A stretch of DNA of 64,000 nt, from the IMG/VR virus record IMGVR_UViG_3300027749_002876, positions 124,001 to 188,000 of that record; one strand, written 5' to 3'. Shown here piece by piece: positions 1,371 through 40,520 of the stretch. Each line of letters opens with the position of its first letter. The stretch's first letter is position 1. The notes beneath the pieces are model-generated. The model was not told the origin of the DNA. It did no database searches and saw only the letters and a program-made list of their open reading frames with translations. The translations under genes were made by a program, and so were the position numbers.

Positions 1371-1373
1371 AGT

Positions 1374-2179: not shown

Positions 2180-2182
2180 ATA

Positions 2183-2319: not shown

Positions 2320-2342
2320 TATCGTTTACCTGAACGTTTCAT
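2319..2342 (-). CDS. leader peptide MKRSGKR
   Basis: AAGGAGA SD 5 nt upstream of ATG AAA CGT TCA GGT AAA CGA TAG. Confidence 0.65.
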   Translation of the reverse strand: MKRSGKR

Positions 2343-2363
2343 GTCGTTCTCCTTTTAAAAATT

Positions 2364-2442
2364 TGGTACCCTGCCCCGGAGTCGAACCGAGAAAACTCTT
2401 CCTTTTGAGAGAAGCGACTTTGCCAAATTTGTCTAGCAGGGC
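2364..2442 (-). tRNA. tRNA-Leu(CAA) with short variable region
   Basis: CTTCT-CTCAAAA-GGAAG arm, A73, only 6-nt variable region. Confidence 0.87.
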
Positions 2443-2449
2443 ATATGTT

Positions 2450-2526
2450 TGGTGCGACCGGAGAGATTCGAACTCCCGACTCCTAAGTTCGTAGCCTAGT
2501 ACTCTATCCAACTGAGTTACGGTCGC
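2450..2526 (-). tRNA. tRNA-Arg(ACG)
   Basis: GCGACCG/CGGTCGC acceptor, loop CTACGAA, A20, CCA. Confidence 0.95.
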
Positions 2527-5256: not shown

Positions 5257-6438
5257 TCATATAGCTATTATATTAGGTGGTAAACTATTTTCAATCTTTC
5301 CTATCAGGTACTGGTGTCTAAAAGTAACTAATGCATCTGGAACTCCCGCTTGGGTAAAGTATACATATTTTGGTATAGTCTTTACTAGATGCTGAATTCC
5401 TCGTTTCCAAATTTCTCTCTCATTTGAGAATAAAGCTGATTTACGAAACCAATTATCAAACTCAGTATTCCACCAAGCAGTAGCTTTGTCCGTCTGAAAC
5501 CAAGTGTTATCCCAAGTAGTATATATTATATTACGCAACCATTTTTCGTGATATTTTCGGCGAGTATACATAGAAGTGTTGATCCAAAATCGCTGTTTAC
5601 CTGGATTTTTTTCTAACCATCGTTTAATAACATGTGCCTGTTTACACATGATATCTGTCGCATCCTTACTCCAGTAAAACAATTCAGTTGTTACATTTGT
5701 ATAGTCTCTATTAAAATCGTTTATTGTAGTAATATTAGCAGTGGCGTCGTTAAAAAACAAATAAAAACTAGTGTTATCAATGTTGGATATAAATGTTTTT
5801 GGTTTATCTACTCCTACAATAATAGCAACTTTCAAGTTTTTATCAAATTGTTTTTTCATATTTCCAAAATGAAAGTAGTTGTATCTAAATAATTGACCAA
5901 CTGACAAATGATCATTTTTATGTAGGACCCAATCACCATCGGTACTTGTATTCAACTCACTCAAAACATTATTACTCACATCTAATACAGTAATTTTGGT
6001 TTTAGGTAATTTTTCAGAAATATATTTTAACCGCGGAATTGCTTGTAATTCATGTTCGGCTGAAAAGTTCCAACTTTCTTTAAACTCTGTGTCTAATACA
6101 GTTGATTTTTTGGTAATTTCGCTTATATGATTAGTTACAATTTCATCAATATGCAAACCCTGTCTGATGAAACTTTCTAATATGTTGTTTGTATCGGAAC
6201 CCCCGCTATAACTTAAAATAATATAATCATATTTTTCTCTAAGTTGTCGTGTTCTTTTATCGTATAATTGGTCTAAACTCTCAGATGGTTCAATATGCCA
6301 TAGGTATTTTGAAAACGTATCTTGATTAAACATCCATTCAATGGGTTTATCTACTGTAGTGCTATAGATACAAGCATCAATTTTTGATCCAAAATCAATG
6401 CCGTTGCAACGGTAGTAACTAAGATCCGTGTTAAGCAT
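5257..6438 (-). CDS. PP-loop protein
   Basis: LSYSGGSDT motif; GVDKP. Confidence 0.7.
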   Translation of the reverse strand: MLNTDLSYYRCNGIDFGSKIDACIYSTTVDKPIEWMFNQDTFSKYLWHIEPSESLDQLYDKRTRQLREKYDYIILSYSGGSDTNNILESFIRQGLHIDEIVTNHISEITKKSTVLDTEFKESWNFSAEHELQAIPRLKYISEKLPKTKITVLDVSNNVLSELNTSTDGDWVLHKNDHLSVGQLFRYNYFHFGNMKKQFDKNLKVAIIVGVDKPKTFISNIDNTSFYLFFNDATANITTINDFNRDYTNVTTELFYWSKDATDIMCKQAHVIKRWLEKNPGKQRFWINTSMYTRRKYHEKWLRNIIYTTWDNTWFQTDKATAWWNTEFDNWFRKSALFSNEREIWKRGIQHLVKTIPKYVYFTQAGVPDALVTFRHQYLIGKIENSLPPNIIAI

Positions 6439-6682
6439 CTATTTTTCCCACATCAGTAATATCTTTTCCCCAGCCGGAGCGATTCCAAACCCGTTCGTGG
6501 AAGAAATATAAAGTGCTATTAACTATAGTAGTAAGGCTAGCTAATCCTAAACCAAATACTATACTACCCGTAGTGTAATAACCAATAATAAAATATTGAA
6601 AAATAATTAACAGTCTCCAACTAATCATTTTTGCTAATGAGCGTGGTATCTTTTCTTGAAATTTTGATTTTAAACTATTCAT
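6431..6682 (-). CDS. DUF2061-like small membrane protein
   Basis: RSLAKMISWR...YFFHERVW pattern. Confidence 0.7.
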   Translation of the reverse strand: MNSLKSKFQEKIPRSLAKMISWRLLIIFQYFIIGYYTTGSIVFGLGLASLTTIVNSTLYFFHERVWNRSGWGKDITDVGKIDA

Positions 6683-8130
6683 GTTATATCCTTATTAATG
6701 TAATCAATAGGTCGGGATACTAAAGAATAATTATTTAATACCTCGTAGCCTATTTTTGGACCGGCATGTTCAGTCATTTGTTTATTGGTGTGTAATATAG
6801 TAGAATAAACCGTTTTTCGATTTTGTGACTTTGCAATTATATCAACACATGCATGTAATTGCTTATGTATGCCATGTCCTCTATGCTGATTGTTTACATA
6901 TGCCAATCTAATAAACAGAGAGTCTAGATATGATGCACTATGATAAAATATACCTGCAATAATTTCAGTTCCTTTTTTGAGTAACACACCACCATCTATT
7001 GAATGCGGCTGTGGTCTATTTAAATAATCTGCTGTATCCGTTTGGTATAATTGAAACATTTTTTCATATTCAGCAACTAGCATAGGATTAGAATGACTAT
7101 ACAATACAAAGTCATAATCTAAATATTTTTCGCTAGGGGCTATACTTACATTGGGTTCTTCAATTACTTTATCGGTATTTTCTTTAAATTCTGCGTTCAT
7201 CGAAACAAATCTAGCATCCTCACCGTACATCCATTCGCTATAATCTTTATATGTGGATCTAGAATTTTCTAAAAAGTCTACAAGATCCCAGTAGGGCACT
7301 GATACTTTTGTTTCCTTAATCATACAGGAATCTTTGAACCAGCTAGGATATGTTTCGTATCCGCTTAATTTACCATACCATAATATATCATTTTTAAAAT
7401 GTCTGGCCTTCATCATACCTTTGCCGTAGTAATTCCAATAATTGCCGGGCTTTAAAATAGAACCATAAGAGAAAGACAATTTATTTTCATGGTAATATTG
7501 AATTGAGTTACAAAATGATTTTACAAAATCATCAGTATAATAACTTGCAATTGATTCCGGGCTATATGGGAAATCAATAACTTTTCTACTCTTGCCCATC
7601 ATTCTAAAACGCTGTTGCATTGTTTCAAAATAATTACAGTATATCGACATTTTAGCTGTGTTACTACCAATAATCTCAGGATCGTTTGCACCTTGAGTAA
7701 TGATAGGGTAATCTCCGTCTAGTTGTTGGCTAAGCCACTCAAACGGATAATGAAACATGGAGAATGGGTGCTCTGTTTTACTACGTTCTATCCATTTCTC
7801 TTTATGTTCATCTAAGTTAATATCAACGATTCTAACTTTAAATCCAAAGAATTTTTCACATTCACGGACATGTGCTAATTCAACATCACTATGACCGACT
7901 GAGTTTAAAAAAACATATTCAGCATCTACACCCATATCTAAAAATGTTCTAGCTATGACTTGACTATCGACACCCGAGCTAAACAACACATATACTTGCC
8001 CATATGTGTTCTTAATCTGCACAGCATCATTATTTGCTTCAGTTCGGAAATCAGAAAAATTTCTATCCGGAGCTTGATATCGGACAATACATTGTTGTCC
8101 TTCTAATCTATATTCTAACCCTTGTTTCAT
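6679..8130 (-). CDS. PP-loop protein fused to a C-terminal GNAT acetyltransferase
   Basis: VLFSSGVDS; C-terminal YVNNQHRGHGIHKQL acetyl-CoA motif A. Confidence 0.7.
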   Translation of the reverse strand: MKQGLEYRLEGQQCIVRYQAPDRNFSDFRTEANNDAVQIKNTYGQVYVLFSSGVDSQVIARTFLDMGVDAEYVFLNSVGHSDVELAHVRECEKFFGFKVRIVDINLDEHKEKWIERSKTEHPFSMFHYPFEWLSQQLDGDYPIITQGANDPEIIGSNTAKMSIYCNYFETMQQRFRMMGKSRKVIDFPYSPESIASYYTDDFVKSFCNSIQYYHENKLSFSYGSILKPGNYWNYYGKGMMKARHFKNDILWYGKLSGYETYPSWFKDSCMIKETKVSVPYWDLVDFLENSRSTYKDYSEWMYGEDARFVSMNAEFKENTDKVIEEPNVSIAPSEKYLDYDFVLYSHSNPMLVAEYEKMFQLYQTDTADYLNRPQPHSIDGGVLLKKGTEIIAGIFYHSASYLDSLFIRLAYVNNQHRGHGIHKQLHACVDIIAKSQNRKTVYSTILHTNKQMTEHAGPKIGYEVLNNYSLVSRPIDYINKDIT

Positions 8131-8138
8131 AGCTATAT

Positions 8139-8807
8139 TTATATGTATTCCGGTGGTGCTAAAATCTTCTTTAAATACCCAGTAACTTCATTTATATTTT
8201 CAATTGTTACTACATCTTTTGCATTTTGAATAACATACTTAGTGCTAGGTTTCCACCAATTATTTTTTGGTAAAGTTAACATATCCTCATAACAAATCTC
8301 TAAAGGATTAAATCTATTTGTTACCATTTCTGTGTTTTTATCACATTGGTCTAATATATACAATGCATCGTCAATCAATGCGTTAGTTACCCTTATACTT
8401 TTTTTGTTTATTGTATTATGTAATTCTAATGTATTAAGTGCTATTAATAAACTCCAAAATGTATCTCGTTTGTTTTTTCTTTTTAAAAGAATATATTGTA
8501 AATCTTTCTTTTCAAAAAAGTCACATATAGGTTCAGTAAGTAAATGCAGGTGCGTTTTTACTGATATTGCTTTATGTTTTTCTAAAAACATGTCAAATAA
8601 ATCAAATCGATAATCTAAATCATTAGCCGCAGTGGTTGAATAATTATATTGTATTCCTGTATCTAAATTTACACTTTTTATACCACAATACATAGTAAAC
8701 AATTCACTTAAATTAAATTGAGGTAAGCTATCTTGTATCCAAGTGCTACCGCTTCTGGGATGGCTTAAGATAACAATTGGTCGTGTTATGTCAATAGTAA
8801 ATGCCAT
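8139..8807 (-). CDS. sulfotransferase-like protein
   Basis: SHPRSGSTW 5'-PSB loop; LKRKN...S; ICYED. Confidence 0.7.
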   Translation of the reverse strand: MAFTIDITRPIVILSHPRSGSTWIQDSLPQFNLSELFTMYCGIKSVNLDTGIQYNYSTTAANDLDYRFDLFDMFLEKHKAISVKTHLHLLTEPICDFFEKKDLQYILLKRKNKRDTFWSLLIALNTLELHNTINKKSIRVTNALIDDALYILDQCDKNTEMVTNRFNPLEICYEDMLTLPKNNWWKPSTKYVIQNAKDVVTIENINEVTGYLKKILAPPEYI

Positions 8808-9364
8808 GGGTCTTTTATAAATCTAAAACTAATTGTAATACGAACTTCATTTGTGTCATTGCTAATAGCATGCGGAACAGTGTTATTCATAAGTGTTGGA
8901 TTATTTAAAACATACCTATCAATTTCTTTCAACTTGGATTCTGCATAAAATATATAAGATCCTTCAGATGGATCAGGAAGAGGTATATACTGTTTTGGAC
9001 CGCTTAGATATTCATAAAATATCACCGGTGTTTCATTATAGTTTTGTATTCCAAAATTTAAACTTAAACAACCTGAAGTATCACCTGATTCGGCCGGTGG
9101 TTCTATATTTCTATCTACATGAGCATCTCTTTCTCCTGCCCCGGGATGTACAACTATATAACAAACCTTTTTTAAGTTGTCATTTAATTGTATTGATGTA
9201 AGATAGTTAACTGCGCTAGTGCAATTTGCAAAAAACTTGAGTAAGTCTACACTCCATAAACCTGTTGGTTTGCCCTCACAATAAGGTAGAATAAAATCTG
9301 TTAATTCTTTATGTATTTCTTTCAGATTTGGTATATCTAATTGCTTATACGTGATGTAGGTCAT
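8786..9364 (-). CDS. 2OG-Fe(II)/cupin oxygenase-like protein
   Basis: AHVD...NTVPHAI...RITISFRF. Confidence 0.65.
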   Translation of the reverse strand: MTYITYKQLDIPNLKEIHKELTDFILPYCEGKPTGLWSVDLLKFFANCTSAVNYLTSIQLNDNLKKVCYIVVHPGAGERDAHVDRNIEPPAESGDTSGCLSLNFGIQNYNETPVIFYEYLSGPKQYIPLPDPSEGSYIFYAESKLKEIDRYVLNNPTLMNNTVPHAISNDTNEVRITISFRFIKDPWHLLLT

Positions 9365-22583: not shown

Positions 22584-22889
22584 TTATCCTAATACAATTT
22601 TTTTATCTGGTACTTTGATACCAGTCGTTGCTTCTAAATACTTCATTTTGATACTATCATCAGTTTCAGCATAGAGAGCAATACTAGTAGTATTTAGCTT
22701 AAATTCACCCTTTGGATTTGCGGTAAATACGCTAGGGATCATTTGCATACCCTGTTGAGTAGGAGCGATAGAGACCGGCTCTTCAATTTGAATAAACTCA
22801 CTACCTGCTTGAATTACTTTTGCTATAAGTTCTTCTCCTGAGTTGAGTTTAAATGTATATACTGTATTTGGATGTATTGCTATTTGCAT
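22584..22889 (-). CDS. hypothetical phage protein (Sm-like fold possible)
   Basis: FKLNSGEELIAKV...YLEATTGI. Confidence 0.65.
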   Translation of the reverse strand: MQIAIHPNTVYTFKLNSGEELIAKVIQAGSEFIQIEEPVSIAPTQQGMQMIPSVFTANPKGEFKLNTTSIALYAETDDSIKMKYLEATTGIKVPDKKIVLG

Positions 22890-23119
22890 TAATTACTTTC
22901 TGTTAATTTTTGTTTAAGTTCAGTGAAACCACCGATTAGTACGCCATCTAAAATGATTTGTGGTACTGTACGTGCTGACGGGATTGCTTCAAGCAATTCT
23001 TCTTTGGTAAATCCATCTCCAATCTTACGTTCTTCGAATGCTATACCTTTACTTGTTAATAGTGCCTTTGCTTGATCGCAATAGGGACAATGATATTTAC
23101 TCCATACGATTGCTGTCAT
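22889..23119 (-). CDS. glutaredoxin
   Basis: CPYC, RTVPQI, IGGFTEL. Confidence 0.95.
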   Translation of the reverse strand: MTAIVWSKYHCPYCDQAKALLTSKGIAFEERKIGDGFTKEELLEAIPSARTVPQIILDGVLIGGFTELKQKLTESN

Positions 23120-23130: not shown

Positions 23131-24021
23131 TTATTTTGTAGTTACTTGAATATTACTTACACTCCAATATGAGCTACTGTTATTACATAATGCTCCCCAA
23201 CCGCAACTACCATTCCACCATGGTGCAGAGCCTGGACCAGTTGGACTGTAACCTTGCCAGAATGAAATAACAGGCCAATAGCCATTCTTCATTGTGGTTA
23301 CTAAATCATTCATGTCAACTGTGCCACTACCTTGCGCCCCGGTTCCATCATTTGTGTCATATACTACAACACTTGTAGAACCTTGTTGATAAGTCACTAT
23401 CATTCTAGGTGTATCGTATGTGATAGTTGTAACCATGTCAAACGGCTTACTCATATCAATACTAGTTATATCATGCAACCCATTAGTTGGATCATTTTTC
23501 ATATTAGCACTAGTAAAGCAACTGTTGTTCAGTGCGGTGCTGGCATATGAATATTCATACCGCTGTGGTGCTGAACTACCCCCGGCACCTAAATGTAGTG
23601 TAGTTTGAAACAACTTGTTACCGTTTGTTTCCATAAAATCAAGTTCTCTACAGTTCCATTGGGTATTGTTTCCGCCTGCGTCACAATAATTGTTTCCAAT
23701 TGGTTGCACTGACGGGTTATTTGGATTCTGTATCAAGTAGATACTAGCGTTAACATAGTTGTTTGACAACTTGCTTAAATCAACAGTGGCTCTGAACTCA
23801 GTGATGTTGGTATAGCTTTGTGTTGAAACAATTCTGCCGGCTTGACATTGAGTATTTGATCCAAATGTCACAGAGTTCCCACTGATAGTAGGTGCACCAC
23901 CTGATGTGCAATTTGCTGTGTAATCTAATACAAATGCAGGCGCAATTGATTTGGGGGCGTCTGTTGTCTTTGAGCATGCCGCTAGAAAGACTAAACTTAA
24001 TATAACTAATAATTTTTTCAT
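23131..24021 (-). CDS. lipoprotein with a GH7-like (clan GH-B) glycoside hydrolase domain
   Basis: LAAC lipobox; YCDA, CRELDFMETN (ExDxxE), IDMSKPF, VISFW. Confidence 0.65.
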   Translation of the reverse strand: MKKLLVILSLVFLAACSKTTDAPKSIAPAFVLDYTANCTSGGAPTISGNSVTFGSNTQCQAGRIVSTQSYTNITEFRATVDLSKLSNNYVNASIYLIQNPNNPSVQPIGNNYCDAGGNNTQWNCRELDFMETNGNKLFQTTLHLGAGGSSAPQRYEYSYASTALNNSCFTSANMKNDPTNGLHDITSIDMSKPFDMVTTITYDTPRMIVTYQQGSTSVVVYDTNDGTGAQGSGTVDMNDLVTTMKNGYWPVISFWQGYSPTGPGSAPWWNGSCGWGALCNNSSSYWSVSNIQVTTK

Positions 24022-24031
24022 ATTTTTCCTT

Positions 24032-25132
24032 TTAAATATTTGGTAACTCGTCATAGTCTAATGATTCTCCCATTACACCAATGACATAATTTGTGCTTTC
24101 TGTTTCTTGTAATGCAGATTGCTTTTTACTTGTATCGCTATGTTTATTGAACCAAGGAATAGGTGTTGTTTTAGGAGCACTGGATTGATATTTAATACCA
24201 ATTTCCTTCAAGGCAGAAACAGCCGTGTAATCAACAAAGTCTTTCAATACAGTTGCATTCAATCCAATGACTGGGCCCATCTTAAACAAATAGTCTGCCC
24301 AATCTTTTTCTTCACGAATAACATCCATATAAAGTTGATAGACTTCATTTTCACATTCAGATTTAACTTGTGCAAAACGACTATCTTCTTTAACTACTTG
24401 GTTAATAAGGTAGGCAGTCCAGCCTTTATGGAGAAGCTCATCTTGGAGAATTAAACTGATAATATTGCCATTACCAATAAAGATTTTGTTCTCAACCATT
24501 GCTAACGATGTAGCGAATGATACCATAAAGCGGAATGCTTCCAATGCGTAACTGGCATGTAATGCCATATAAATTGCCTTGATATGTTCTTTTTCAGTAA
24601 CTAGTTCACCTAGTTGTTTGCGGCAATTGACTACATGCAATGCCTCATAATAGTCACCTACACTGCTTGCCATATCTACGATCTCTTTAGTGTCATGTAT
24701 AGTAGCGAACACATCCTTGGGAACGTTGTAGATATTACGAATAATGTGACTGTACGATTTACTATGAATGTTTGTTTCAAAGAATGTCCAGTTGTAGACC
24801 AATGCTTCTAATTCTGGCAAACTGATTACCGGCATAAAGATTTGACTTGGGCCACGACCTTGTAAACTGTCTAGTGCTGTTTGTCTTAGCAAGTTACTAG
24901 TAAAAATATGCTTGACTGCATCGCTGGCATCTTTGAAGTCGTTGCTGTCTTTGGTAAGACTAATCTCTTCCGGTTGCCAGAAGAAACCACGTGCAGTAGC
25001 TTCAAAGTCTGCAATTTTCTTGTACTTGACTTCTTCAAAGCGTTGAATAGTAACTGGACCTGCTGGGTCTAGAAACATCTTACGATTGAGATAATCTGTT
25101 TTTGTATTTAGGTTATATTGTTGTTTACTCAT
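24032..25132 (-). CDS. nrdB: ribonucleotide reductase class Ia beta subunit
   Basis: FFWQPEE, ETNIHSKSY, EAFRF, DELLH, QETE...Y. Confidence 0.95.
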   Translation of the reverse strand: MSKQQYNLNTKTDYLNRKMFLDPAGPVTIQRFEEVKYKKIADFEATARGFFWQPEEISLTKDSNDFKDASDAVKHIFTSNLLRQTALDSLQGRGPSQIFMPVISLPELEALVYNWTFFETNIHSKSYSHIIRNIYNVPKDVFATIHDTKEIVDMASSVGDYYEALHVVNCRKQLGELVTEKEHIKAIYMALHASYALEAFRFMVSFATSLAMVENKIFIGNGNIISLILQDELLHKGWTAYLINQVVKEDSRFAQVKSECENEVYQLYMDVIREEKDWADYLFKMGPVIGLNATVLKDFVDYTAVSALKEIGIKYQSSAPKTTPIPWFNKHSDTSKKQSALQETESTNYVIGVMGESLDYDELPNI

Positions 25133-25138: not shown

Positions 25139-25957
25139 TTACTTTTTGTTATAATAATATTCTATAGGATGCTCATGCACTATTTTAGGATAATTCCAAT
25201 TCCACTCATTTGTTATTAATTTATTAAAAACAATTTCAGATACAACTGTGTTCATTTCTAGTGTGAAATGACATCCCATTACTTCTGGCTTTTCTATGTA
25301 GTTTTCACTTTCAGCATATTTTAATCCAAACGTAGACCATTGATACTCAACTAAATCACTTAGTCCTATATTTATATAAGGAGCCGATTGCTTGAAACAA
25401 GGGATTATTATTGTTTTTGGCGCTTTTTTTAGAATATCATCAACCATAAGTTGCTGGGCCATTGATAGGAATTTATCATCTTTAATCATGTGCCAAGTGG
25501 TTAGATCATAAACCATTCGTATTTCACTGTTAGTTAGCTTATATGATTGTTTTATAGACTCTAATTGCTTAATACTAGATGCTTGGTATGTTGGATTTGG
25601 GGCAACAGTTGGTAATAATACTTTTTGAGTATATCTATTTGGATCTGTGACTAAAACTATATTAATATCATAGTTTTGATAATTATTCATAAAAGTATTG
25701 TACGCAAAGAGAAATGGTGTTCCACCAGCACAAAAATTATCTATACTTTTTAATTGTAATCTAATAGCTAGCCGTGTTGGCCACCAATCACCTATATTTG
25801 CAACAACAAATTCATTCTCTTTTGGTAATGGTGGTCCATCGCCGAAGCTGTCACCGTATATTGCCATACGTAAGTTGCTGTTAGGATTTATGTCAACAAC
25901 ATACCGACCTTCGGGCCACTCACCACCGGTTCTATATGTGATACTTTGATATTCCAT
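25139..25957 (-). CDS. hypothetical SGNH/GDSL-like protein inserted between nrdA and nrdB
   Basis: IYGDSF, WPTRLA, C-terminal CHF...N. Confidence 0.55.
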   Translation of the reverse strand: MEYQSITYRTGGEWPEGRYVVDINPNSNLRMAIYGDSFGDGPPLPKENEFVVANIGDWWPTRLAIRLQLKSIDNFCAGGTPFLFAYNTFMNNYQNYDINIVLVTDPNRYTQKVLLPTVAPNPTYQASSIKQLESIKQSYKLTNSEIRMVYDLTTWHMIKDDKFLSMAQQLMVDDILKKAPKTIIIPCFKQSAPYINIGLSDLVEYQWSTFGLKYAESENYIEKPEVMGCHFTLEMNTVVSEIVFNKLITNEWNWNYPKIVHEHPIEYYYNKK

Positions 25958-28765: not shown

Positions 28766-31700
28766 TTAAGCGTAAGTTGCTTGAAAACGTGAACCAGTTG
28801 TTAATACAAAGTTACCAGTCACGTTACCAGCATTAGTATTTGCACCAGTTGTCAATTGCATGTTATTAGCACTGATTACTGCGGCGTTAGCTAATGTTAC
28901 GTTACCTGCTGTTACATTACCCGTTGCGCTTAATGTAGTATAGAAACCACCAGTTGCACCAATGTTACCAACGTTAGCATTACCTGATACTGAAACAGTT
29001 GTTAATGTACCAACTGAAGTAATATTACCTTGAGCCGCAGTTGTTACAGTACCTGCTGTAGTAGCACTAGTTGCAGTACCTGCTGTTGCAACTGATAAGT
29101 TAGCAACTTGAGTAGTTGAGGTAACAACTAATGGTGCAGTACCTGTTGCAACAGTACTAATGTATTGACCAGTAATGTTTGCTGTTGTACCAGTGTGATT
29201 AGTAGCACTAATATTACCAGCAGTAATATTACCAGAAACACTCAATGATGCTAGTGTTCCAACCGCTGTCAAGCTAGACGTAACTACTGTAGCACTTAAC
29301 GCAGTACCAACAATGTTAGCGGCTTGAACACTTGAGATACCATTAGCGTTACCAGTAATAACACCTGTATTAGCTGTCAATGCGACTGCTGTGATAGTAC
29401 CATTAACACCTAAACCAGTCAATGTACCAACTGATGTAATATTACCTTGAGCCGCTGTTGTTACTGTACCTGCTGTAGTAGCACTTGTAGCCGCACCTGA
29501 TAATGCACCTGTGAATGTCGTTGCAGATACATTACCTGCAGTTACGTTACCAGAAACACTTAAACTTGTTAATGTACCGAGTGAAGTGATGTTTGGCTGT
29601 GCGTTAGTTGTTATTGTACCAGTGAATGTGTTAGCACTAATATTATTAGCCCCGGAAATATTACCACCTGTACCACTTGATACAATATTACCAATTGTTG
29701 CATTACCACTTACACTAAATGTACCATTAATGTTTGCTCCGGTACCGGTTACTACAACAACGTTAGCGTTACCCACTGCACTAATGTTAACATTGCCGTT
29801 AGCTGATGGAACGCTTACGTTACTGTTACCATTAGATATACTTGATGTAGACAATCCAGTCAATGCTGAACCATTACCAATGAAGAAGTTAGCAGTAACG
29901 TTACCGGTAGCACTTACGATGCCACCTGTAATAATGTTACCTGCATTTAAGTTACCAGTGGCAGTTATTAAACCACCTGTACCAATGTTACCAATGTTTG
30001 CATTACCTGATACTGAAACACTTGTTAATGTACCAACTGAAGTAATGTTAGGTTGTGCCGCAGTTGTTACTGTGGCTGCTGAACCAGTTGCACTACCAGT
30101 TAATGCACCTGTAAATGTTGTAGCAGATACATTACCTGCTGAAATATTACCTGTTACTGCTAACGATGTCAGTGTACCAACACTAGTAATATTAGGTTGT
30201 GCCGCAGTTGTTACTGTACCCGCTGTAGTAGCACTTGTGGCCGCACCACTTAGTGCACCAACAAATGTTGTAGCAGTAATAGACGCATTACCCAAGTTCG
30301 CACTAATGCTTGTATTAATTACCGCAGATGAATTCCCATTTGCAGATGAAGTAGAGAATGTAGGGTATGCAGTTGTTGAGGTAGATGTATTTTGTAACAA
30401 TGCAGATGCATTAGTTGCACTTGTTGCCGTACCAGTTAATGCACCTGTGAATGTCGTAGCACTTACATTACCTGCCGCAATGTTACCTGATACTGATAAA
30501 CTAGTTAATGTACCAACTGAAGTAATTTGTGATTGAGCGGCATTGACACTGAATGCTGTTCCAGTTAATGTTAAACCTGTTCCTGCTGTATAACTACCTG
30601 CACCAGAGAATTGTGCCCAAGTAATAGCCGTAGTACCTAATGTACCACCTGCATTTGATGTACATACCCAACCAGTATCTGATTGTGTAGTACCACCTTC
30701 AACGAATACATATGCACCTGGAACCTCTGCCCAAGAATCCATATCTGTTGTTCTTGTCCAAGCACCTGCGGCACATAGATATAGTCCGTTATTCTGATCC
30801 AATGTTTGGTTCTTAACCAATACTCTGTTACCGGCCACTAAAACAACACCATCAACTGTTTGTGTCCCTGATAAAGTAATATTAACTGTAGTTGCGGCTA
30901 CAACACTAGCTTTAGTATCAAGACCTTGTGCTACTGTATCTACATATGCTTTAGTTGCCGCATCTGTATCAGCAGACGGTGTTGCAAGGCTTGTAATGTT
31001 AAAGTTATTCATATTAACATTACCACTGAAACTACCTGTTCCAGTTGCAACTAAGGCTGCTGTACCCAAATTACCTACGTTAGCATTACCACCTGCACTT
31101 AGTGTGCCGGCGGTTGCTAAGTTACCTGCTGTTGCAGTACCGGTTACACTTAATGAAGCTAGTGTGCCAGTACTTGTGATGTTTGGTTGTGCATTAGTTG
31201 TTACAGTACCCGCTGTAGTTGCAGAACCAGCAGTACCTGCACTGGTTGCATATGTTGCATTAGCTACTGTACCACTTACATTAGCCCCTGCTACACTATT
31301 AGCTGTCGTTGCAAATGATACGGCACCGGTAACATTAGCACCTGTGATTGAACTTAAACTTGATCCGTTACCACTTACATTAGTAAATACGCCAAATGTT
31401 GCACCTAAGTTACCAACGTTTGCATTACCCGATACTGACACACTTGTTAATGTACCTGTACTTGTAATGTTTGGCTGTGCCGCGGTTGTTACTGTGGCCG
31501 CAGATCCAGTTGCACTACCTGTTAATGCACCAGTGAATGTTGTAGCAGATACATTACCTGCGCTTACATTACCTGTTACTGATAAAGAAGTCAATGTACC
31601 AACTGATGTAATGTTACCTTGAGCCGCTGTTGTTACAGTACCGGCTGTAGTAGCACTTGATACAGTACCACTTACGTTAGCACCTGCTACTGCATTTGCT

Positions 31701-33142
31701 GTTGTTGCATAAGCAACTGCACCAGAGACGTTAGCACCTGCTACTGCATTGGCTGTTGTTGCGAATGCAACTGCACCACTTACGTTAGCACCTGCTACTG
31801 AGTTAGCTGTTGTTGCATAAGCAACTGCACCGGAGACATTTGCACCTGCTACTGCATTTGCACTTGCTGCCACTGTTGCACTTGCTACAGTACCACTTAC
31901 GTTAGCACCTGCTACTGCATTTGCTGTTGTTGCATAAGCGACTTCTCCTGATACGTTAGCACCTGCTACTGAGTTAGCTGTTGTTGCATAAGCAACTGCT
32001 CCTGATACGTTAGCACCTGCTACTGAGTTAGCACTTGCTGCCACTGTTGCACTTGCTACAGTACCACTTACGTTAGCACCTGCTACTGCATTTGCACTTG
32101 CCGCTACCGTTGCACTAGATGCAAGACCAGTCAATGCACCAGTGAATGTTGTTGCTGATACGTTACCTGCACTGATATTACCTGATGCACTTAGTGTTCC
32201 GGCAACATTAGCACCAGTTCCAGTCACGACTAAAATATTTGCATTACCGGACGCACTAACAGTAACATTACCATTATTAAATGTTCTTACATTTGCTGTA
32301 CCGTTTTGTATTGCAGTTGCATCAATACCAGTTAACTGGCTACCATTACCAATAAAGAAGTTACCACTGACATTACCAGTTGCAGAAACAATACCTGCAG
32401 TTACTAAATTAGCACCAGTGATGTTACCAGATACACTAACAGTTGTACCAGCAATATTTGTTGCAGTTAAAGTATTTGTTGTGGAATTAAAAGTGAAGTT
32501 TGCGCTTGCACCAAAATTGTCAGCATTATTATACTGAACTTGTGTGTTTGTACCACTTGGTTGTTGCATATCCCAAGGACTACCGTTAGCATATAAAATG
32601 TTGTTAGTTAGTACATTGCCGGCTGCTACATTACCAGTAACACTTAAACTTGTTAGTGTACCTGTACTAGTAATATTTGGTTGAGCCGCAGTTGTTACAG
32701 TACCGGCTGTTGTTGCCGCACCTGATAATGCACCAGTGAATGTTGTTGCTGAAACATTACCACCGGAGATGTTACCTGCTACAGATAGTACACCGGTTGC
32801 TTTGTCAAAACTGAACCCACTGTTACCACCTAATGAACTACCATCATTAAATTGAACTTGTGTATTAGTGCCGCCCGGGGTAGCACTGTCAGTTCCCCAA
32901 TATACGTGCCCGTTAGCTCCGTATGATTTGAGTACCTGACCATTAGCACCGTCTGCAATAAAAATATTGCCTACAACACCTAAATCAACGTTACCGGTTG
33001 CAACGAAAGCACCGTTAAATGAACCGTACCCTCCATTACTATTCAATACGTTGAAGTCACCGTTTGTATCAACGAATAACGTTGACTTTCCGGCTGGCGG
33101 GTTGGGGACATTTGAACTTGCTCTTTGTAGTAAAATCAGCAT
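28766..33142 (-). CDS. long repeat-rich tail fibre/appendage protein
   Basis: Repeats AQPNITSVGTLTSL and ANVSG; DAATKAYVD and RVLVKNQ...NGLY fibre motifs. Confidence 0.75.
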   Translation of the reverse strand: MLILLQRASSNVPNPPAGKSTLFVDTNGDFNVLNSNGGYGSFNGAFVATGNVDLGVVGNIFIADGANGQVLKSYGANGHVYWGTDSATPGGTNTQVQFNDGSSLGGNSGFSFDKATGVLSVAGNISGGNVSATTFTGALSGAATTAGTVTTAAQPNITSTGTLTSLSVTGNVAAGNVLTNNILYANGSPWDMQQPSGTNTQVQYNNADNFGASANFTFNSTTNTLTATNIAGTTVSVSGNITGANLVTAGIVSATGNVSGNFFIGNGSQLTGIDATAIQNGTANVRTFNNGNVTVSASGNANILVVTGTGANVAGTLSASGNISAGNVSATTFTGALTGLASSATVAASANAVAGANVSGTVASATVAASANSVAGANVSGAVAYATTANSVAGANVSGEVAYATTANAVAGANVSGTVASATVAASANAVAGANVSGAVAYATTANSVAGANVSGAVAFATTANAVAGANVSGAVAYATTANAVAGANVSGTVSSATTAGTVTTAAQGNITSVGTLTSLSVTGNVSAGNVSATTFTGALTGSATGSAATVTTAAQPNITSTGTLTSVSVSGNANVGNLGATFGVFTNVSGNGSSLSSITGANVTGAVSFATTANSVAGANVSGTVANATYATSAGTAGSATTAGTVTTNAQPNITSTGTLASLSVTGTATAGNLATAGTLSAGGNANVGNLGTAALVATGTGSFSGNVNMNNFNITSLATPSADTDAATKAYVDTVAQGLDTKASVVAATTVNITLSGTQTVDGVVLVAGNRVLVKNQTLDQNNGLYLCAAGAWTRTTDMDSWAEVPGAYVFVEGGTTQSDTGWVCTSNAGGTLGTTAITWAQFSGAGSYTAGTGLTLTGTAFSVNAAQSQITSVGTLTSLSVSGNIAAGNVSATTFTGALTGTATSATNASALLQNTSTSTTAYPTFSTSSANGNSSAVINTSISANLGNASITATTFVGALSGAATSATTAGTVTTAAQPNITSVGTLTSLAVTGNISAGNVSATTFTGALTGSATGSAATVTTAAQPNITSVGTLTSVSVSGNANIGNIGTGGLITATGNLNAGNIITGGIVSATGNVTANFFIGNGSALTGLSTSSISNGNSNVSVPSANGNVNISAVGNANVVVVTGTGANINGTFSVSGNATIGNIVSSGTGGNISGANNISANTFTGTITTNAQPNITSLGTLTSLSVSGNVTAGNVSATTFTGALSGAATSATTAGTVTTAAQGNITSVGTLTGLGVNGTITAVALTANTGVITGNANGISSVQAANIVGTALSATVVTSSLTAVGTLASLSVSGNITAGNISATNHTGTTANITGQYISTVATGTAPLVVTSTTQVANLSVATAGTATSATTAGTVTTAAQGNITSVGTLTTVSVSGNANVGNIGATGGFYTTLSATGNVTAGNVTLANAAVISANNMQLTTGANTNAGNVTGNFVLTTGSRFQATYA
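31660..32105 (-). repeat. eight in-frame copies of AN(A/S)VAGANVSG, 54/63-nt units
   Basis: Repeated GTTAGCACCTGCTACTG cores. Confidence 0.85.
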
Positions 33143-33914: not shown

Positions 33915-36900
33915 TTAAATTGTTCTGAACTGTGTTGTCCAAACAGTGCTATTAGAGCTTGCCGGAGTTACTTGCAATTGAATGTTGCCACCGCTCAACA
34001 CAACGCTTAGTGTCCCAGTTGGTGCTCCATTAACTAAAACTGTTCCAAACGTTGCATAATCAGCAACAGTAGCACCATCTGTAACTGTTTGAACAGTTGC
34101 GATAGAGTATTTACCACCGGCTGCATCTACCCCTTTAACTAAGAACTCTACACCAGTGATTCCAGAAACCGGTACACTTGCAATCACTTGACCTGCAGTA
34201 ATTGAAGTTGTTGTTGCTGTTCCCCACTGAATATTAGTGTTACCCAATTTTACAAAAGTAGATATATTTGCAGTGTTGGCTGCAATTTCACCTGTAGTTG
34301 ATAAATTACCACCTGATACATTACCTGACACTGACAAGTATCCATTAATATTTGCACCAGTACCAGTAAATGTAACAACGTTAGCATTACCTGCTACTGA
34401 GAATTCAATATTGCCATTAGCAACAGGAATACTTACATTACTAGTACCATTACTGATACCAGCTGAGTTAATAGCTATCCAACTTAGTACGCCGTTGCCA
34501 TCAGTTCGTAATACATAACCACTAGTACCACCAGTAATTGTTACATTACTAACTGGACCTAAATTGCTTGTACCAGTTACTGACAATGTACCAATGTTTG
34601 CTGTACTAATGTTTGCTGTACCAGTTGTTGCTATGTTACCAGCAGTTATATTACCTGTAGCACTTATGTTATTACCAACGTTTAAGTTAGCAGTAACGTT
34701 TGCATTGTAAGCTGTTAATGTATCTGTACTGAATGTTAAGTTACCACTATCACTTAATACACCACCGGTGCCTGCTAATGTTACACGACCTGAAGTCAAA
34801 CTTGTAACTTGAGCATTTGGAGTTTTTACTAATGTAGCAACGTTAGCATAAGCGCCAATGTTTGCATTACCCACAACTAATAAATCTGTAACTCCATTGT
34901 ACGTAAATGTTGATGCATCAACTAATTGTCCACCTGTATTAGAGAATGTAACACGACCGTTTGACAAATTATTAGAACTTAAGTTTGCTGCCACTAAGTT
35001 AGCAGTAAAGTTACCCATACCAGTTGATAAACTGTTCCAGAATGAATCGTATGTTAGATTTGAATTGTCAACTAACAAACCATTTGTATCAGCAAACGTT
35101 ATTCGTCCGGCAACTAATGATGTTACTTCAACGTTTGGAGAGTTAACTAATGTTCCAACGTTTGCATATGAGCCAACGTTTGCATTACCAACTGATAATA
35201 AATCACCTATTGCCGCATATGTGAACTGTGAGTTACCTGCTAACAAACCACCTGTACCAGCGTATGTGACATATGTTGCTGTTAATGCGTTTGATGTTAA
35301 GTTTGCCGCAACAACGTTGCCACTTAAATTAGCATTTACAGTTGATAGTGTATTTGTTACAAATGTAAGATTAGCACTATCTGTTAATAAACCACCTGTA
35401 CCAGCAAATGTTATTCTAGTTGAAGTCAACCCATTTGATGTTAAGTTTGCCGCAATTGCGTTGCCAGTTAAGTTAGCATTTACAGTTGATAGTGTATTTG
35501 CTACAAATGTAAGATTAGCACTGTTTGTTAGTACTCCGCCTGTACCAGCAAATGTAACATAAGTTGATGTTAAATTATTTGATGTTACATTACTAGCAAT
35601 AACATTGCCACTTAAGTTAGCATTGACGGTTGATAGAGTATCTGCTACAAATGTAAGATTTGCGCTATCGTTTAGGATACCACCTGTACCAGCGAATGTA
35701 ACACGTGTTGATGTTAAATTATTTGATGTTAAGTTTGCCGCAATTGCGTTTCCACTTAAGTTAGCATTTACAGTTGATAGAGTATCTGCTACAAATGTAA
35801 GATTTGCACTATCTGTTAATATACCAGCAGTGCCAGCAAGTGTAACACGTGTTGATGTTAAATTATTTGATGTTACATTACTAGCAATAACATTGCCACT
35901 TAAGTTAGCATTTACAGTTGATAGAGTATCTGCTACAAATGTAAGATTTGCACTATCTGTTAATATACCAGCAGTGCCAGCAAGTGTAACACGTGTTGAT
36001 GTTAAATTATTTGATGTTACATTTCCTGCAATTAAGCCATTTGTAATGTTTGCAGTATTTGAACTTAGTGCATTATTAGCAGTGATATTATTAGCAGTAA
36101 AATTACCTGTTAATGAAGAACTTCCGTTAACTGTTAAGTTACCAACTACTAAGTTACCACTAACGTTTCCAGAATTTGCAGTAAACTCATTAGTGATGCT
36201 TAAGTTGTTAGTAGTGCTATTACCTGTTACAGACAATGAGCCTACGTTTGCTGAAGTTGTAACACTTAATGTGTTAGTAAAAACTACACCATTAGAATTA
36301 ATATTGGCTGCTTGAACATTACCGGTTAAGTCTACGCTCGTACCTGTTGCCGCACCAAGATTTGGTGTTGTGAATGCGGCATTTGCTTTAACAATAATGT
36401 TACCGCCGTTGATTTCAGTTGTAATATTATCAACGTTAGCAGTGATTAGTGTACCAATAACACTGATACCATTGGAGCCTGTATATTGTCCTGCGGCACT
36501 AAACTGAGAGAAAACAATATTACTAGTACCAATATGAATCTCACCGGGCGGTGCCGTCAATACATACGAAGAACCTGCATAAATAGCCCCGTCCATAATA
36601 AAGAAGAACGACCCAGTGCATAATGCAACAGCACTCTTTGGTTGATATGAATCACCGTCGCTTGAACGTGTAAGTACCCAGTTAGTTGCACCTGTACCAA
36701 CTGTTGTTACATCGTATATACCATTTTCAATTTGATTTGTCTGACCTTGAACAAGTACTCTTGCTCCAACTGTCATTAATGTATTATCAATAGTTAATGC
36801 GGCTTGTGCACCTGAATTAGTAAGAGTAGCACCAACGCCACCGTTACCTAGTGCTGGTTGTGTTAAACCTGTAGCATTTGTTAATGTCGTGACTTCAGCT

Positions 36901-39900
36901 CCAAAGTAACCATTTTTAATAGTAATAGAATTTAATGTTGGTGCACTGTATACGAAATATCCTTCACCTGCAATAATTCCATTGAATGAATTCGTGAATT
37001 CAATATCATCGTCAACAACTAATCCATGATTAGTACTAAATGTAATTGTTTTACCACCAGCAATAGTAGTAACTGATAATACAGTACCACCATTTAAGTA
37101 ACTAGCAGTTAAATTAGATACCGATGTAACATTAGCTGCCGGGTGAATGAATAAACCTTGACTGATGTTATCAACATATTCTTTTGTTGCCGCATCTGTT
37201 GGTGTAGTAGGTAATGCAAGACTTGTAATTCTTACACTACCCACATCAACTGTACCAGTACCAAAAGTGTGCAAGTTGATATTTGTATTACCAGTTTGCT
37301 GAGAATAAATGTCTAATGCACCAACATTAGATGTTAGAGTTGGTGAGTATAATGCACCTGCATTAACATTACCAGTAGCATCAATATAACCTGTTACGTT
37401 TGCGCCAAGTTCAGATACAACAATAATATTAGCAAAACCGTTTGCACTAAAAGCAATATTACTATCTTGGAAGATTGCTATGTTTGATGTTCCATTTGCT
37501 AATATACCATACAAGTAATTAGCACTGACAATATTTGCAGTTACGTTACCAGATGCAGTAAAGTGGTTAGCAGATGCTAAATTACCTAAATTAGCATTTA
37601 GTGATGTTAAGTTACCAGTAAAGTTACCATAACCCGTAATATTAGCACCAGTTGGTGTTATTATTACTGTTGTGTTTCCACCTGCTGTTACACCAACGTT
37701 ACCATTATTTGCAATAGTTACATTAGATGAACCGTTAACTAATACACCAGTGAAGTAATTGGCAGATGCCAAGTTACCTAAATTAGCATTCAATGATGTT
37801 AAGTTGCCACTAAAGTTAGCAACATTACCAGTCAATATATTTGCCACTGTTGCATTGTTTGCTGTCAAATTACCAGTTACATTAGCAGTCAATGCTGTTA
37901 ATGTATCACTGATGTTTGCATTGTTAGCAGATGCTAAATTACCTAAATTAGCATTTAATGATGTTAGATTACCACTGAAATTAGCGACATTACCGGTTAA
38001 CAGATTTGTTACTGTTGCATTGTTTGCACTTAAATTACCAGTTACATTAGCTTGAGCCGCTGTAAGAGCTGTTGTAATATTAGCATTAACTGATGTAAGA
38101 TTTGCTGTTACATTTGCATTGTTGGCTGTTAAATTACCAGTTACATTAGCTTGGGCCGCTGTAAGAGCTGTTGTAATGTTAGCATTAGCTGATGTAAGAT
38201 TTGCTGTTACATTTGCATTGTTGGCTGTTAAATTACCAGTTACATCAGCAGTTAATACTGTTAATGTAGCACTGATATTTGCATAGTTAGCAGTTAACAA
38301 GTTACCAGCTGAAATATTACCAGCTGAAATATTACCTGATACACTGAACGCATTAGCATTTAACGTATTAATATTTGCAATGTTTGCAATCAATGTGTTT
38401 GTTACATTAGCATTACTTGTTGTCAACAATGTTGTTACATTGGCATTACTTGTTGTCAACAATGTTACGATGTTTGCGCTATTTGCTGTTAAAACGTCAG
38501 TTATGTTTGCGTTAGCAGATACTAGATTGCCAGAGAAATTAGCAAAGTTTGCTGTTATTAAATTACCTAAATTAGCATTACCGGATGTGATATTACCGTT
38601 AATATTTGCTACGTTTGCAAGAATTGTTCCTAGAACGTTAGCATTATTAGATTGTAAGTTACTAGAAACTTGCAAGAAGTTAACAATTGCATAATTACCT
38701 AAGTTAGCATTACCTGCTGTCAAGTTTGCACTAATGTTAGCGTATTGTGTTTCTAAGAACTGTGCAATGTTTGCATTACCTGCATACAAGTTGCCAGTTA
38801 TGTTTGCTGTGCTTGCATTAATATTACCAGAAATATTTGCAGTGTTTGCATTTAATATTCCAAAGTTTCCATAATTAGCTGTTGCTAAATTACCTAAATT
38901 AGCATTTAGTGCAACGATATTACCAGAAAAGTTTGCTGTATTACCAGAAAGTGCTAGGTTAACTTTTAAGTTAGTTGTTGCATTGATATTACCGGGACTT
39001 GTAAATGAACCGTCTTGTGCAAATGTCCAAGTATTAGCAATTGAACCACCTGTACCAACTTGTACAGTTACATTACCACCACGATTTTGGTATAAATCTG
39101 TTTGACTTCCACCTAATGTAAGTCCAGAACCACCAAATGTTCCACCAACAATTTGTGAAGCACCACCTAATTCTACTTGACCACTTGGTTTAAATTGTGT
39201 TGCGTTGCCAGCTGAGTAGATTGCTACGATACCACTACCGTTGCCCATACCAATACTTGTATTAGCTGTTATATTAACTATGTTTTCAGTTTGTACGTTT
39301 CCAGCTGTTACTAAGTTACCACCAGTGACGTTACCACTAAAATTACCAACGTTACCGTTTAAGGCGCCGCTGATATTTGCAGTGCCAGTAACATTTAATG
39401 TTTGAGTAGCATAATCAAACGTAAAGTTTGCGCTTGCGCCAAAATTGTTACTACCGTCATTGTATTGAATCTGTGTATTTGCACCGGCAGCTTCTTGTAA
39501 ATCCCAAGGTTGACCGTTTGCATATAATAGATTGTTTGTACGAACATTGCCAGCTTGCATTGTATCTGTAACATTAATATTACTTGATGCGTTAACAAAG
39601 TTAGCTGTTGCTAAATTGCCTAAGTTAGCATTTGTTGATATGATGTTACCATTAACATTTAGATATCCAACTACATTTGCGCCTGTTGTAGTAACAACTA
39701 ATGTTGTATTACCACCTGCAGTAAGATTAATATTACCATTTGCTGTAGGGATGCTTAAATTACTAGTACCGTTGCTCACACCAGACGTGTTTAGTCCTGT
39801 TAATTGACTACCATTACCAATAAAGTAACCAGCAGTGATGTTAGCAGTAGATGTTAAATTACCACCAATAACTACTTGCCCGGTTCCATTAGGATTAATG

Positions 39901-40520
39901 TTTAAATTTGCATTAGTATCGGTACCTGCAATATTAGAACCTGAAATTTGAAGGTTGCCAATATCAGTACCACTTGGTAAATTTGTTACACCTGTTAAAC
40001 CAACATATCTGTAACCAACAATATAAAGAACTTTACCAGCAGTCAATGCCGCAGGGATAGTTTCACCAATGAAGTTTAATACACCAGATTCATAATTATA
40101 ATAATATTGACCAGTGCCGCCTGAACCATCAGCAAAGATTTGTGTACCTGTAACCGTTGGGTTTGCGGCGCCAGAAGTATCGACCCACACTTGAACCACA
40201 TAGGTAGCGCCAAATTCTTGTGGAATCCAGTTAGTTAATTGAGTTTCCCAAGTTGGGTATATACCACCAACTGGTACTGTTGTGTTATCTGCAATAGTTT
40301 CTACAGCAGTTGCACCAACGTATGCTTGAACAATACTTGTTACTGCGGCAGCTGGATTGGGAATTGCATCTGCTTGTGTCCAAGCAGTGTCTCCGCGATT
40401 TAGTGCGGGGCTAGGAATTGATTCGTTACTAGGACTTTTATTTTGTGCAGTGTCAGTTTTAGTGACACCAAACGCTTGTTTGTATAATAAGTCAACGATT
40501 TGTGCTTGTGATACGGCCAT
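33915..40520 (-). CDS. giant (2201 aa) repeat-rich fibre/appendage protein
   Basis: ANLGNL repeats, DAATKEYVD, RVLVQGQ...NGIY, WVLTR. Confidence 0.75.
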   Translation of the reverse strand: MAVSQAQIVDLLYKQAFGVTKTDTAQNKSPSNESIPSPALNRGDTAWTQADAIPNPAAAVTSIVQAYVGATAVETIADNTTVPVGGIYPTWETQLTNWIPQEFGATYVVQVWVDTSGAANPTVTGTQIFADGSGGTGQYYYNYESGVLNFIGETIPAALTAGKVLYIVGYRYVGLTGVTNLPSGTDIGNLQISGSNIAGTDTNANLNINPNGTGQVVIGGNLTSTANITAGYFIGNGSQLTGLNTSGVSNGTSNLSIPTANGNINLTAGGNTTLVVTTTGANVVGYLNVNGNIISTNANLGNLATANFVNASSNINVTDTMQAGNVRTNNLLYANGQPWDLQEAAGANTQIQYNDGSNNFGASANFTFDYATQTLNVTGTANISGALNGNVGNFSGNVTGGNLVTAGNVQTENIVNITANTSIGMGNGSGIVAIYSAGNATQFKPSGQVELGGASQIVGGTFGGSGLTLGGSQTDLYQNRGGNVTVQVGTGGSIANTWTFAQDGSFTSPGNINATTNLKVNLALSGNTANFSGNIVALNANLGNLATANYGNFGILNANTANISGNINASTANITGNLYAGNANIAQFLETQYANISANLTAGNANLGNYAIVNFLQVSSNLQSNNANVLGTILANVANINGNITSGNANLGNLITANFANFSGNLVSANANITDVLTANSANIVTLLTTSNANVTTLLTTSNANVTNTLIANIANINTLNANAFSVSGNISAGNISAGNLLTANYANISATLTVLTADVTGNLTANNANVTANLTSANANITTALTAAQANVTGNLTANNANVTANLTSVNANITTALTAAQANVTGNLSANNATVTNLLTGNVANFSGNLTSLNANLGNLASANNANISDTLTALTANVTGNLTANNATVANILTGNVANFSGNLTSLNANLGNLASANYFTGVLVNGSSNVTIANNGNVGVTAGGNTTVIITPTGANITGYGNFTGNLTSLNANLGNLASANHFTASGNVTANIVSANYLYGILANGTSNIAIFQDSNIAFSANGFANIIVVSELGANVTGYIDATGNVNAGALYSPTLTSNVGALDIYSQQTGNTNINLHTFGTGTVDVGSVRITSLALPTTPTDAATKEYVDNISQGLFIHPAANVTSVSNLTASYLNGGTVLSVTTIAGGKTITFSTNHGLVVDDDIEFTNSFNGIIAGEGYFVYSAPTLNSITIKNGYFGAEVTTLTNATGLTQPALGNGGVGATLTNSGAQAALTIDNTLMTVGARVLVQGQTNQIENGIYDVTTVGTGATNWVLTRSSDGDSYQPKSAVALCTGSFFFIMDGAIYAGSSYVLTAPPGEIHIGTSNIVFSQFSAAGQYTGSNGISVIGTLITANVDNITTEINGGNIIVKANAAFTTPNLGAATGTSVDLTGNVQAANINSNGVVFTNTLSVTTSANVGSLSVTGNSTTNNLSITNEFTANSGNVSGNLVVGNLTVNGSSSLTGNFTANNITANNALSSNTANITNGLIAGNVTSNNLTSTRVTLAGTAGILTDSANLTFVADTLSTVNANLSGNVIASNVTSNNLTSTRVTLAGTAGILTDSANLTFVADTLSTVNANLSGNAIAANLTSNNLTSTRVTFAGTGGILNDSANLTFVADTLSTVNANLSGNVIASNVTSNNLTSTYVTFAGTGGVLTNSANLTFVANTLSTVNANLTGNAIAANLTSNGLTSTRITFAGTGGLLTDSANLTFVTNTLSTVNANLSGNVVAANLTSNALTATYVTYAGTGGLLAGNSQFTYAAIGDLLSVGNANVGSYANVGTLVNSPNVEVTSLVAGRITFADTNGLLVDNSNLTYDSFWNSLSTGMGNFTANLVAANLSSNNLSNGRVTFSNTGGQLVDASTFTYNGVTDLLVVGNANIGAYANVATLVKTPNAQVTSLTSGRVTLAGTGGVLSDSGNLTFSTDTLTAYNANVTANLNVGNNISATGNITAGNIATTGTANISTANIGTLSVTGTSNLGPVSNVTITGGTSGYVLRTDGNGVLSWIAINSAGISNGTSNVSIPVANGNIEFSVAGNANVVTFTGTGANINGYLSVSGNVSGGNLSTTGEIAANTANISTFVKLGNTNIQWGTATTTSITAGQVIASVPVSGITGVEFLVKGVDAAGGKYSIATVQTVTDGATVADYATFGTVLVNGAPTGTLSVVLSGGNIQLQVTPASSNSTVWTTQFRTI
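35230..36020 (-). repeat. in-frame 144-nt (48-aa) tandem repeat, about 5-6 copies
   Basis: NLTSTRVTLAGTAGILTDSANLTFVADTLSTVNANLSGN recurring at 144-nt period. Confidence 0.85.

Follow-up and report, generated by a model that had tools for sequence, protein, structure and literature searches.

A phage-encoded lipoprotein related to the GH7 cellulases, and predicted to act on glycans, in the ribonucleotide reductase module of a T4-like phage

Among the main cellulase families is glycoside hydrolase family 7 (GH7), which is regarded as all but confined to eukaryotes; the long loops of its classical members form a tunnel or a deep cleft. The substrates of GH7 enzymes are beta-1,4-glucans and related polymers, chitosan (beta-1,4-glucosamine) included (PMC12323267). 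A more compact member is RsSymEG1 (PDB 8POF), whose source is a protist living in symbiosis with the termite Reticulitermes speratus; its depositors describe it as a smaller form of GH7 endoglucanase. We present the case of a related gene carried by a phage. It lies in a stretch of 64,000 nucleotides of the IMG/VR virus record IMGVR_UViG_3300027749_002876 (record positions 124001-188000), which as a whole we call the window, and all coordinates are in window numbering unless a record or locus is named. The gene codes for a protein of 296 amino acids (aa) with a lipoprotein leader, and it sits among the ribonucleotide reductase genes nrdA and nrdB and a glutaredoxin gene. We consider it probable, if far from certain, that the product is an exported lipoprotein and a retaining endo-beta-glycanase of clan GH-B that acts on a glycan of the host envelope or matrix. 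The gene and the parts of it that carry the GH7 likeness are the following.

23131..24021, minus strand: coding sequence of the GH7-related lipoprotein, 296 aa (P0001), stop codon included, from the open reading frame (ORF) list and translation.
23680..23688, minus strand: Y112-C113-D114, counterpart of the GH7 YCD block, invariant in 60/60 sequences; aligned with YCDA in 8POF and with the GH7 consensus.
23617..23652, minus strand: predicted catalytic strand, residues 124-135 (C-R-E126-L-D128-F-M-E131-T-N-G-N), in which C124, E126, D128, E131, N133 and N135 are invariant.
23593..23595, minus strand: His143, counterpart of the GH7 His after the catalytic strand, invariant and aligned to 8POF and to the GH7 consensus.
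23218..23259, minus strand: residues 255-268, with Trp255 and Trp268 at the ends; both align with conserved GH7 Trp positions (...SLW, WLD).

A first-pass annotation, made from the sequence alone, had reported a signal peptide with a LAAC lipobox followed by a series of GH7-like motifs, and all of them are present in the translation in the order given: NASIYL (residues 91-96), YCDA (112-115), CRELDFMETN (124-133), IDMSKPFDMVT (188-198) and MKNGYWPVISFW (244-255). Alignment pairs the catalytic strand with the C.E.D..E.N block in 8POF and in GH7 proteins that Pfam recognises. By analogy with that block, E126 is the predicted nucleophile, D128 the helper and E131 the acid/base; the roles themselves (nucleophile, helper Asp, acid/base Glu and a nearby His) we take to be those of Cel7A. 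The invariant C113 and C124, whose counterparts in GH7 are cysteines beside the nucleophile, probably form a disulfide. W255 and W268 are conserved in at least 90% of the family (alignment of 60 sequences) and, by analogy with Cel7A, would be sugar-stacking platforms at subsites -2 and +1.

A word-index search finds 120 metagenomic homologues with 35-94% identity, and not one of them has a Pfam domain. An alignment of 60 sequences, spanning down to about 39% identity, has as its invariant residues G62, A78, Y95, Y112, C113, D114, C124, E126, D128, E131, N133, N135, Q139, H143, Q213, Y221 and G247. The Tyr, the Asp and the E-D-E-H set are invariant in a sample of 56 distant matches as well. Pairwise ratios of nonsynonymous to synonymous substitution rates (dN/dS) among phage copies are 0.05-0.15, which indicates strong purifying selection on a functional gene.

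The relation to GH7 emerges in comparisons of sequence profiles. Scans of the single protein against Pfam, PHROGs and NCBIfam report no family beyond weak matches to its signal peptide, a single-sequence search of the PDB gives one match at chance level (E 0.24), and a six-frame search of the whole record has no match to the Pfam GH7 model, PF00840. A profile built from the 60 homologues matches RsSymEG1 at E 1.4e-12 in a PDB search, and in that alignment the YCD, IDxxKPF and SLW blocks are paired as well as the catalytic strand. An exhaustive search of 1.84 billion representative proteins with the hidden Markov model (HMM) of the family has 460 matches. In the sample of 56 distant ones, 45 belong to PF00840, several with 120-143 bits for a cut-off of 27; some of these GH7 matches carry CBM1, ricin or PAN modules, and we read them as eukaryotic. 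Compared by hhalign with 60 GH7-clade domains, a set from which all phage-type rows were left out, the family aligns over 225 columns (99.9% probability, E 3.4e-31) and its blocks pair with the GH7 blocks YYCDA, C-EIDIMEAN, IDT..PF.V, GM.LV.SYW and WLD. On these profiles, the likeness to GH7 is a true homology, although a distant one.

The predicted structure agrees. An AlphaFold2 model made with the family alignment has a mean predicted local distance difference test score (pLDDT) of 91.9 and a predicted template modelling score (pTM) of 0.89, and in a Foldseek search of the PDB with the model the top 49 among the matches listed are all GH7. In VIA-align the model superposes on 8POF with Z 18.0 (242 residues aligned, 22% identity) and on other GH7 structures with Z 16-17 over 240-250 residues. 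The modelled protein thus has a beta-jelly-roll fold of the GH7 type. The same comparisons bear on the idea that this is an ordinary GH16 enzyme of the laminarinase or lichenase type, whose likeness to GH7 would come from the clan GH-B that both families share. GH16 structures match the model too, with Z 15.3, but over only 182 residues; a language-model atlas gives sub-threshold scores of 0.84 to GH16 clusters and 0.83 to GH7; and a library of predicted viral structures, which has no close relative of the protein, returns GH16 as its best match, at 9% identity. In sequence this likeness does not hold up. The protein has no match to the Pfam GH16 model (PF00722) at E up to 10, the Pfam families that the 56 distant proteins match do not include GH16, the family HMM reaches at most 4.5 bits on a control set of 13 Pfam-positive GH16 proteins, and a comparison with GH16 by hhalign reaches 30% probability over 91 columns, where the GH7 alignment spans 225. 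A tree with ten GH16 domains as outgroup also parts GH16 from the GH7 and phage-type clades (branch supports of 98 for GH16, 93 for the GH7-type and 77 for the phage-type). Membership of GH16 was rejected on the HMM, the hhalign comparison and this tree, and we regard the GH16 account as extremely improbable.

In a second tree, of 118 domains, a branch with support 92 separates the phage-type from the Pfam-GH7-type sequences. Both trees are quick ones, with a long-branch warning raised and with a GH7 sample that consists of environmental search matches only, and on them the phage-type clade is provisionally sister to the sampled GH7s and not nested within them. Because the Pfam GH7 model misses the protein and the GH16-rooted tree has it in a sister position, the protein is GH7-related and not a demonstrated member of GH7. 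The proposal of the first-pass annotation, a compact GH7-like enzyme with a lipoprotein signal, is backed by the sequence profiles, the fold comparison and the invariant catalytic residues; the outcome that it had named as contrary, a best match to an ordinary GH16 or to a lectin, is not what we find, since GH7 is the best match and the catalytic residues do not vary. The role that it suggested, breakdown of a polysaccharide receptor or matrix for superinfection exclusion or release, it put forward as a possibility. We also put forward, tentatively and as a rather doubtful proposition, that the clade is a new family-level lineage of glycoside hydrolases in clan GH-B, found mainly in aquatic phages, that it is the prokaryotic and viral sister, or the source, of the eukaryotic GH7, and that its substrate is a bacterial envelope glycan and not the cellulose of plants or algae. 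A literature search of incomplete coverage found no description of GH7-like proteins from phages or bacteria.

The leader of the protein is defined by these features.

24027..24031, minus strand: AAGGA ribosome-binding site, directly after the nrdB stop codon (24034-24032), read from the sequence.
23974..24021, minus strand: signal peptide with lipobox, residues 1-16 (MKKLL...LAAC), read from the sequence.
23131-23133, minus strand: stop codon of the lipoprotein gene, from the ORF list and translation.

The likely start is the ATG at 24021, because it lies 5 nt past the AAGGA (24031-24027) and because homologues in the family alignment have the MKKLL N-terminus in common. A longer listed ORF, from an ATG at 24054, was set aside; its start falls within nrdB and lacks a ribosome-binding site, and the homologues do not share it. 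The leader has the features expected of a lipoprotein (basic n-region, hydrophobic h-region, lipobox [LVI][ASTVI][GAS]C), with a basic MKK, a hydrophobic stretch and then L-A-A-C16, residues 13-16 being the lipobox and Ser standing at +2. Cys16 is the predicted lipidation site. A lipobox is found in 77/107 full-length homologues, and most of the remaining ones have cleavable leaders of the signal-peptidase-I type, so that export appears to be a trait of the whole family, and the lipid anchor a common one. This Sec/lipoprotein leader also led us to reject a depolymerase carried on the virion.

Another account of a small phage lipoprotein is that it binds and does not cut, with the jelly-roll serving as a lectin, or with the protein excluding superinfecting phages in the manner of Cor or Llp by binding a receptor. 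The gene is present in some related modules and absent from others, a polymorphism typical of exclusion genes, and its leader matches the Cor family weakly (E 0.25). This and the other weak matches in Pfam and PHROGs, to a lipoprotein attachment site and to spanin leaders, are to the N-terminus alone, however, and the Cor and spanin ones are confined to the signal peptide. Residues E126, D128, E131 and H143 are invariant in the 60 sequences and in the distant GH7 relatives, which is unexpected for a pure binder. A lectin-only role was rejected on that invariance, and we consider a non-catalytic lipoprotein of either kind very unlikely.

The alignment of the catalytic residues, taken together with the leader peptide, points instead to a retaining endo-beta-glycanase placed at the cell envelope. 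In the infected cell, the gene would be transcribed together with the nrdA-nrdB-glutaredoxin genes, and the product would be exported by Sec and then lipidated at Cys16. In a host with lipoprotein sorting like that of E. coli, the Ser at +2 suggests an outer-membrane location, and the protein would fold in the periplasm with its disulfides. There it would act as a retaining, endo-acting beta-glycanase, with E126 as nucleophile, E131 as acid/base and D128 and H143 as helpers, while W255 and W268 would stack on sugars on either side of the cleavage site. We expect an open cleft and endo action because the protein is much shorter than the cellobiohydrolases of about 430 aa and because its nearest solved relative is an endoglucanase; the tunnel-forming loops of the cellobiohydrolases are presumably absent at 296 aa. 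The target would be a beta-linked polysaccharide of the host envelope or matrix, most probably one like a beta-1,4-glucan. Clearing it from around the infected cell could help progeny to escape, or could remove a glycan receptor.

Several observations weigh against this picture. The protein has no match to PF00840 at E up to 10, and 0/60 family members match that model at E up to 1. Where the GH7 YCDxQ block has its Gln, the phage protein has Gly116, so the subsite chemistry may differ from that of cellulases. The lipid anchor is not universal among family members. An early or middle co-expression with nucleotide metabolism is unexpected for a factor of phage release, and we can name no candidate host glycan.

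The genes on either side are the following.

24032..25132, minus strand: nrdB, ribonucleotide reductase small subunit, directly upstream (ORF list, annotated relatives, synteny).
22889..23119, minus strand: gene of the glutaredoxin/thioredoxin fold, directly downstream (phrog_22 at E 5.5e-17, synteny).

The nrdB stop codon lies 10 nt before the ATG of the lipoprotein gene, and the glutaredoxin gene begins 11 nt after its stop codon; with a gap of only 10 nt, nrdB and the lipoprotein gene are probably co-transcribed. The order on the minus strand of the window is nrdA, an ORF of 272 aa, nrdB, the lipoprotein gene, glutaredoxin, an ORF of 101 aa, a PAAR-like gene and a large protein of the baseplate region. 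PHROG matches in the window include baseplate wedge and virion structural proteins, and the nrd genes are similar to those of T4-like phages, from which we take the phage to be a T4-like myovirus. The gene psbA is not found in the whole record, and for that reason the phage is not a typical cyanophage. Matches in IMG/VR and in lake metagenomes, as we read the sample records, suggest a freshwater origin of the phage group.

This neighbourhood suggests an auxiliary metabolic enzyme, that is, a periplasmic or surface glycanase that frees sugars from a glucan store of the host or from an external polysaccharide and so feeds energy and nucleotide synthesis. One such store would be the osmoregulated glucans of the periplasm, plentiful when osmolarity is low. 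The place of the gene inside the nrdA-nrdB-glutaredoxin module, with gaps of 10-11 nt and a probable co-expression with nucleotide metabolism, is what such an enzyme would have; the suggested freshwater origin fits too, as does a dockerin-like module on some bacterial members, of a kind seen in free-living carbohydrate-active enzymes. We know, however, of no hydrolase of beta-1,2-glucans that is not of another fold, so that the version with periplasmic glucans requires a new specificity. No genes of sugar uptake or catabolism stand beside the gene in the loci examined, and a lipid anchor is unnecessary for this role, which we judge unlikely.

The gene context was examined in 80 of the viral loci; IMG/VR holds 115 relatives in all. 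In most of the 80 the gene is in the nrd module, in one of two arrangements, nrdB-gene-glutaredoxin (as in the window) or nrdA-gene-nrdB, and synteny with nrdB holds in about 60/80. A tblastn search of 50,697 deposited phage genomes has no match. In another phage lineage (locus L085, positions 6608-8861, plus strand), with ribonucleotide reductase, DnaB and queuosine-synthesis genes present, the homologue lies two genes downstream of an Amidase_2 endolysin, and in further phage contexts it adjoins RNA ligase or sugar-modification genes.

The Amidase_2 locus bears on a role as an accessory of cell-wall degradation or lysis, in which the lipoprotein faces the periplasm and attacks the wall, at the beta-1,4 glycan of peptidoglycan or at some other polymer, like the membrane-bound lytic transglycosylases. 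The window itself has an endolysin-like gene about 5 kb from the lipoprotein gene, the N-terminal leader, and that part only, resembles the leaders of spanin lipoproteins, and GH7 enzymes can act on chitosan-type polymers (PMC12323267). In most of the phages, however, the nrd module and not a lysis cassette houses the gene, and a murein hydrolase exported early by Sec risks premature lysis. To our knowledge, no enzyme of clan GH-B cleaves peptidoglycan. We find a lysis accessory quite unlikely.

The whole record is a single linear contig of 524,565 bp, and it has a second, diverged nrd module in which grx follows nrdB after 14 nt and the GH7-like gene is missing. Absent from this related copy, found at two alternative positions and under selection, the gene behaves as an accessory (moron-like) phage gene.

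Outside phages, four Halieaceae genomes have a copy with about 50% identity in ordinary chromosomal surroundings; sampling of the Halieaceae gave a match in only 3/151 genomes, and in the tree of 118 domains these copies are one clade among the metagenomic-family sequences. Some members have an N-terminal dockerin-like calcium-binding module (locus L106, positions 6001-7368, plus strand; P0123, P0128 and P0280). The single context inspected for such a member, P0090 in L106, is bacterial and adjoins genes for an rRNA methyltransferase, PhzF and MerC. In P0278, a protein of 544 aa (loci L107/L108, positions 6001-7635, plus strand), the C-terminal half matches the family profile. Its contigs are marine, of 42-62 kb, with a Ser/Thr kinase, a papain-like protease and a fragment of the RNA polymerase subunit Rpb1, another P0278 contig reaches 110 kb, and the context is giant-virus-like. 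A dinoflagellate transcript (P0145, from Biecheleria cincta in EukProt) falls inside the phage-type clade, paired with the metagenomic P0142 with support 99, and may represent either a genuine member from a eukaryote or contamination. Most of the clade is thus carried by phages, alongside a few members from bacteria, a giant-virus-like one and one from a dinoflagellate transcript, and the earlier statement that such enzymes are known essentially from eukaryotes does not hold for it.

Some other features of the window and the record are reported here in their own right. The ORF of 272 aa between nrdA and nrdB (25139-25957, minus strand) has no PHROG family, and among the fetched loci it occurs only in two identical copies of the region (L005 and L006) and weakly in L033. 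Two very large ORFs lie beside the nrd module, one of 1458 aa (28766-33142, minus strand), with matches solely to PHROGs of unknown function, and one of 2201 aa (33915-40520, minus strand). A dense tRNA array includes 353-2526 (minus strand) of the window. The record has two such arrays in opposite orientation, at about 115.3-126.5 kb, the first, with 31 tRNAs, and from about 417.0 kb to at least 426.1 kb. Numerous blocks of the record recur inverted at 75-90% identity, and there is a direct repeat of 4.1 kb at 99.6% (record positions 172924-177012 = 520477-524565). The second copy of nrdA (record positions 399511-402797) matches the nrdA of the window in two pieces with about 950 bp between them (400887-401844), a candidate intein, intron or homing-endonuclease insertion. 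Despite its listing as 100% complete, the record has the look of an assembly that joined at least two related T4-like genomes, and not of a single 524-kb genome.

A large and conserved clade in phages that is sister to GH7 alters the known range of this fold, and offers a tangible starting point for tracing how GH7 arose within clan GH-B. As an abundant, selected and, by its leader, exported predicted enzyme of freshwater T4-like phages, the protein is a candidate for a new route of remodelling the host surface or its glycans. It would also be a minimal GH7-like scaffold, of 280 aa, that is naturally made in bacteria.

Amongst the described systems, RsSymEG1 is the best match in both sequence and structure. 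At 321 aa it is similarly compact, it has the same short spacing from the YCD block to the E-x-D-x-x-E strand, and it shares the IDxxKPF, Q-G-G and SLW blocks. RsSymEG1 is eukaryotic, secreted and recognised as GH7, whereas the phage protein escapes the Pfam GH7 model, has a bacterial lipoprotein leader and a Gly where YCDAQ has its Gln, and differs in a C-terminal region that is rich in Trp (GYSP.GPG..PWW). The classical GH7 enzymes (Trichoderma Cel7A and Cel7B, Humicola Cel7B; PF00840) have the beta-jelly-roll of the phage model, at the Z scores given above for GH7 structures other than 8POF, and share with the phage protein the E-x-D-x-x-E with its His, the Cys beside the nucleophile and the two Trp positions. 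They are eukaryotic, often with a CBM1 module, and have 370-440 aa with long loops, against 296 aa in the phage protein. The GH16 enzymes (laminarinases, lichenases and VvEG16) have the same jelly-roll, a related catalytic motif and a comparable size, but no significant relation to the phage family in sequence profiles, and only about 180 residues superpose. Cor, Llp and the Rz1-type spanins have a leader that depends on Sec and a lipobox and are made in the infected cell, as we predict for the phage protein. They are small and non-enzymatic, whereas the phage protein joins such a leader to a 280-aa domain of the catalytic type.
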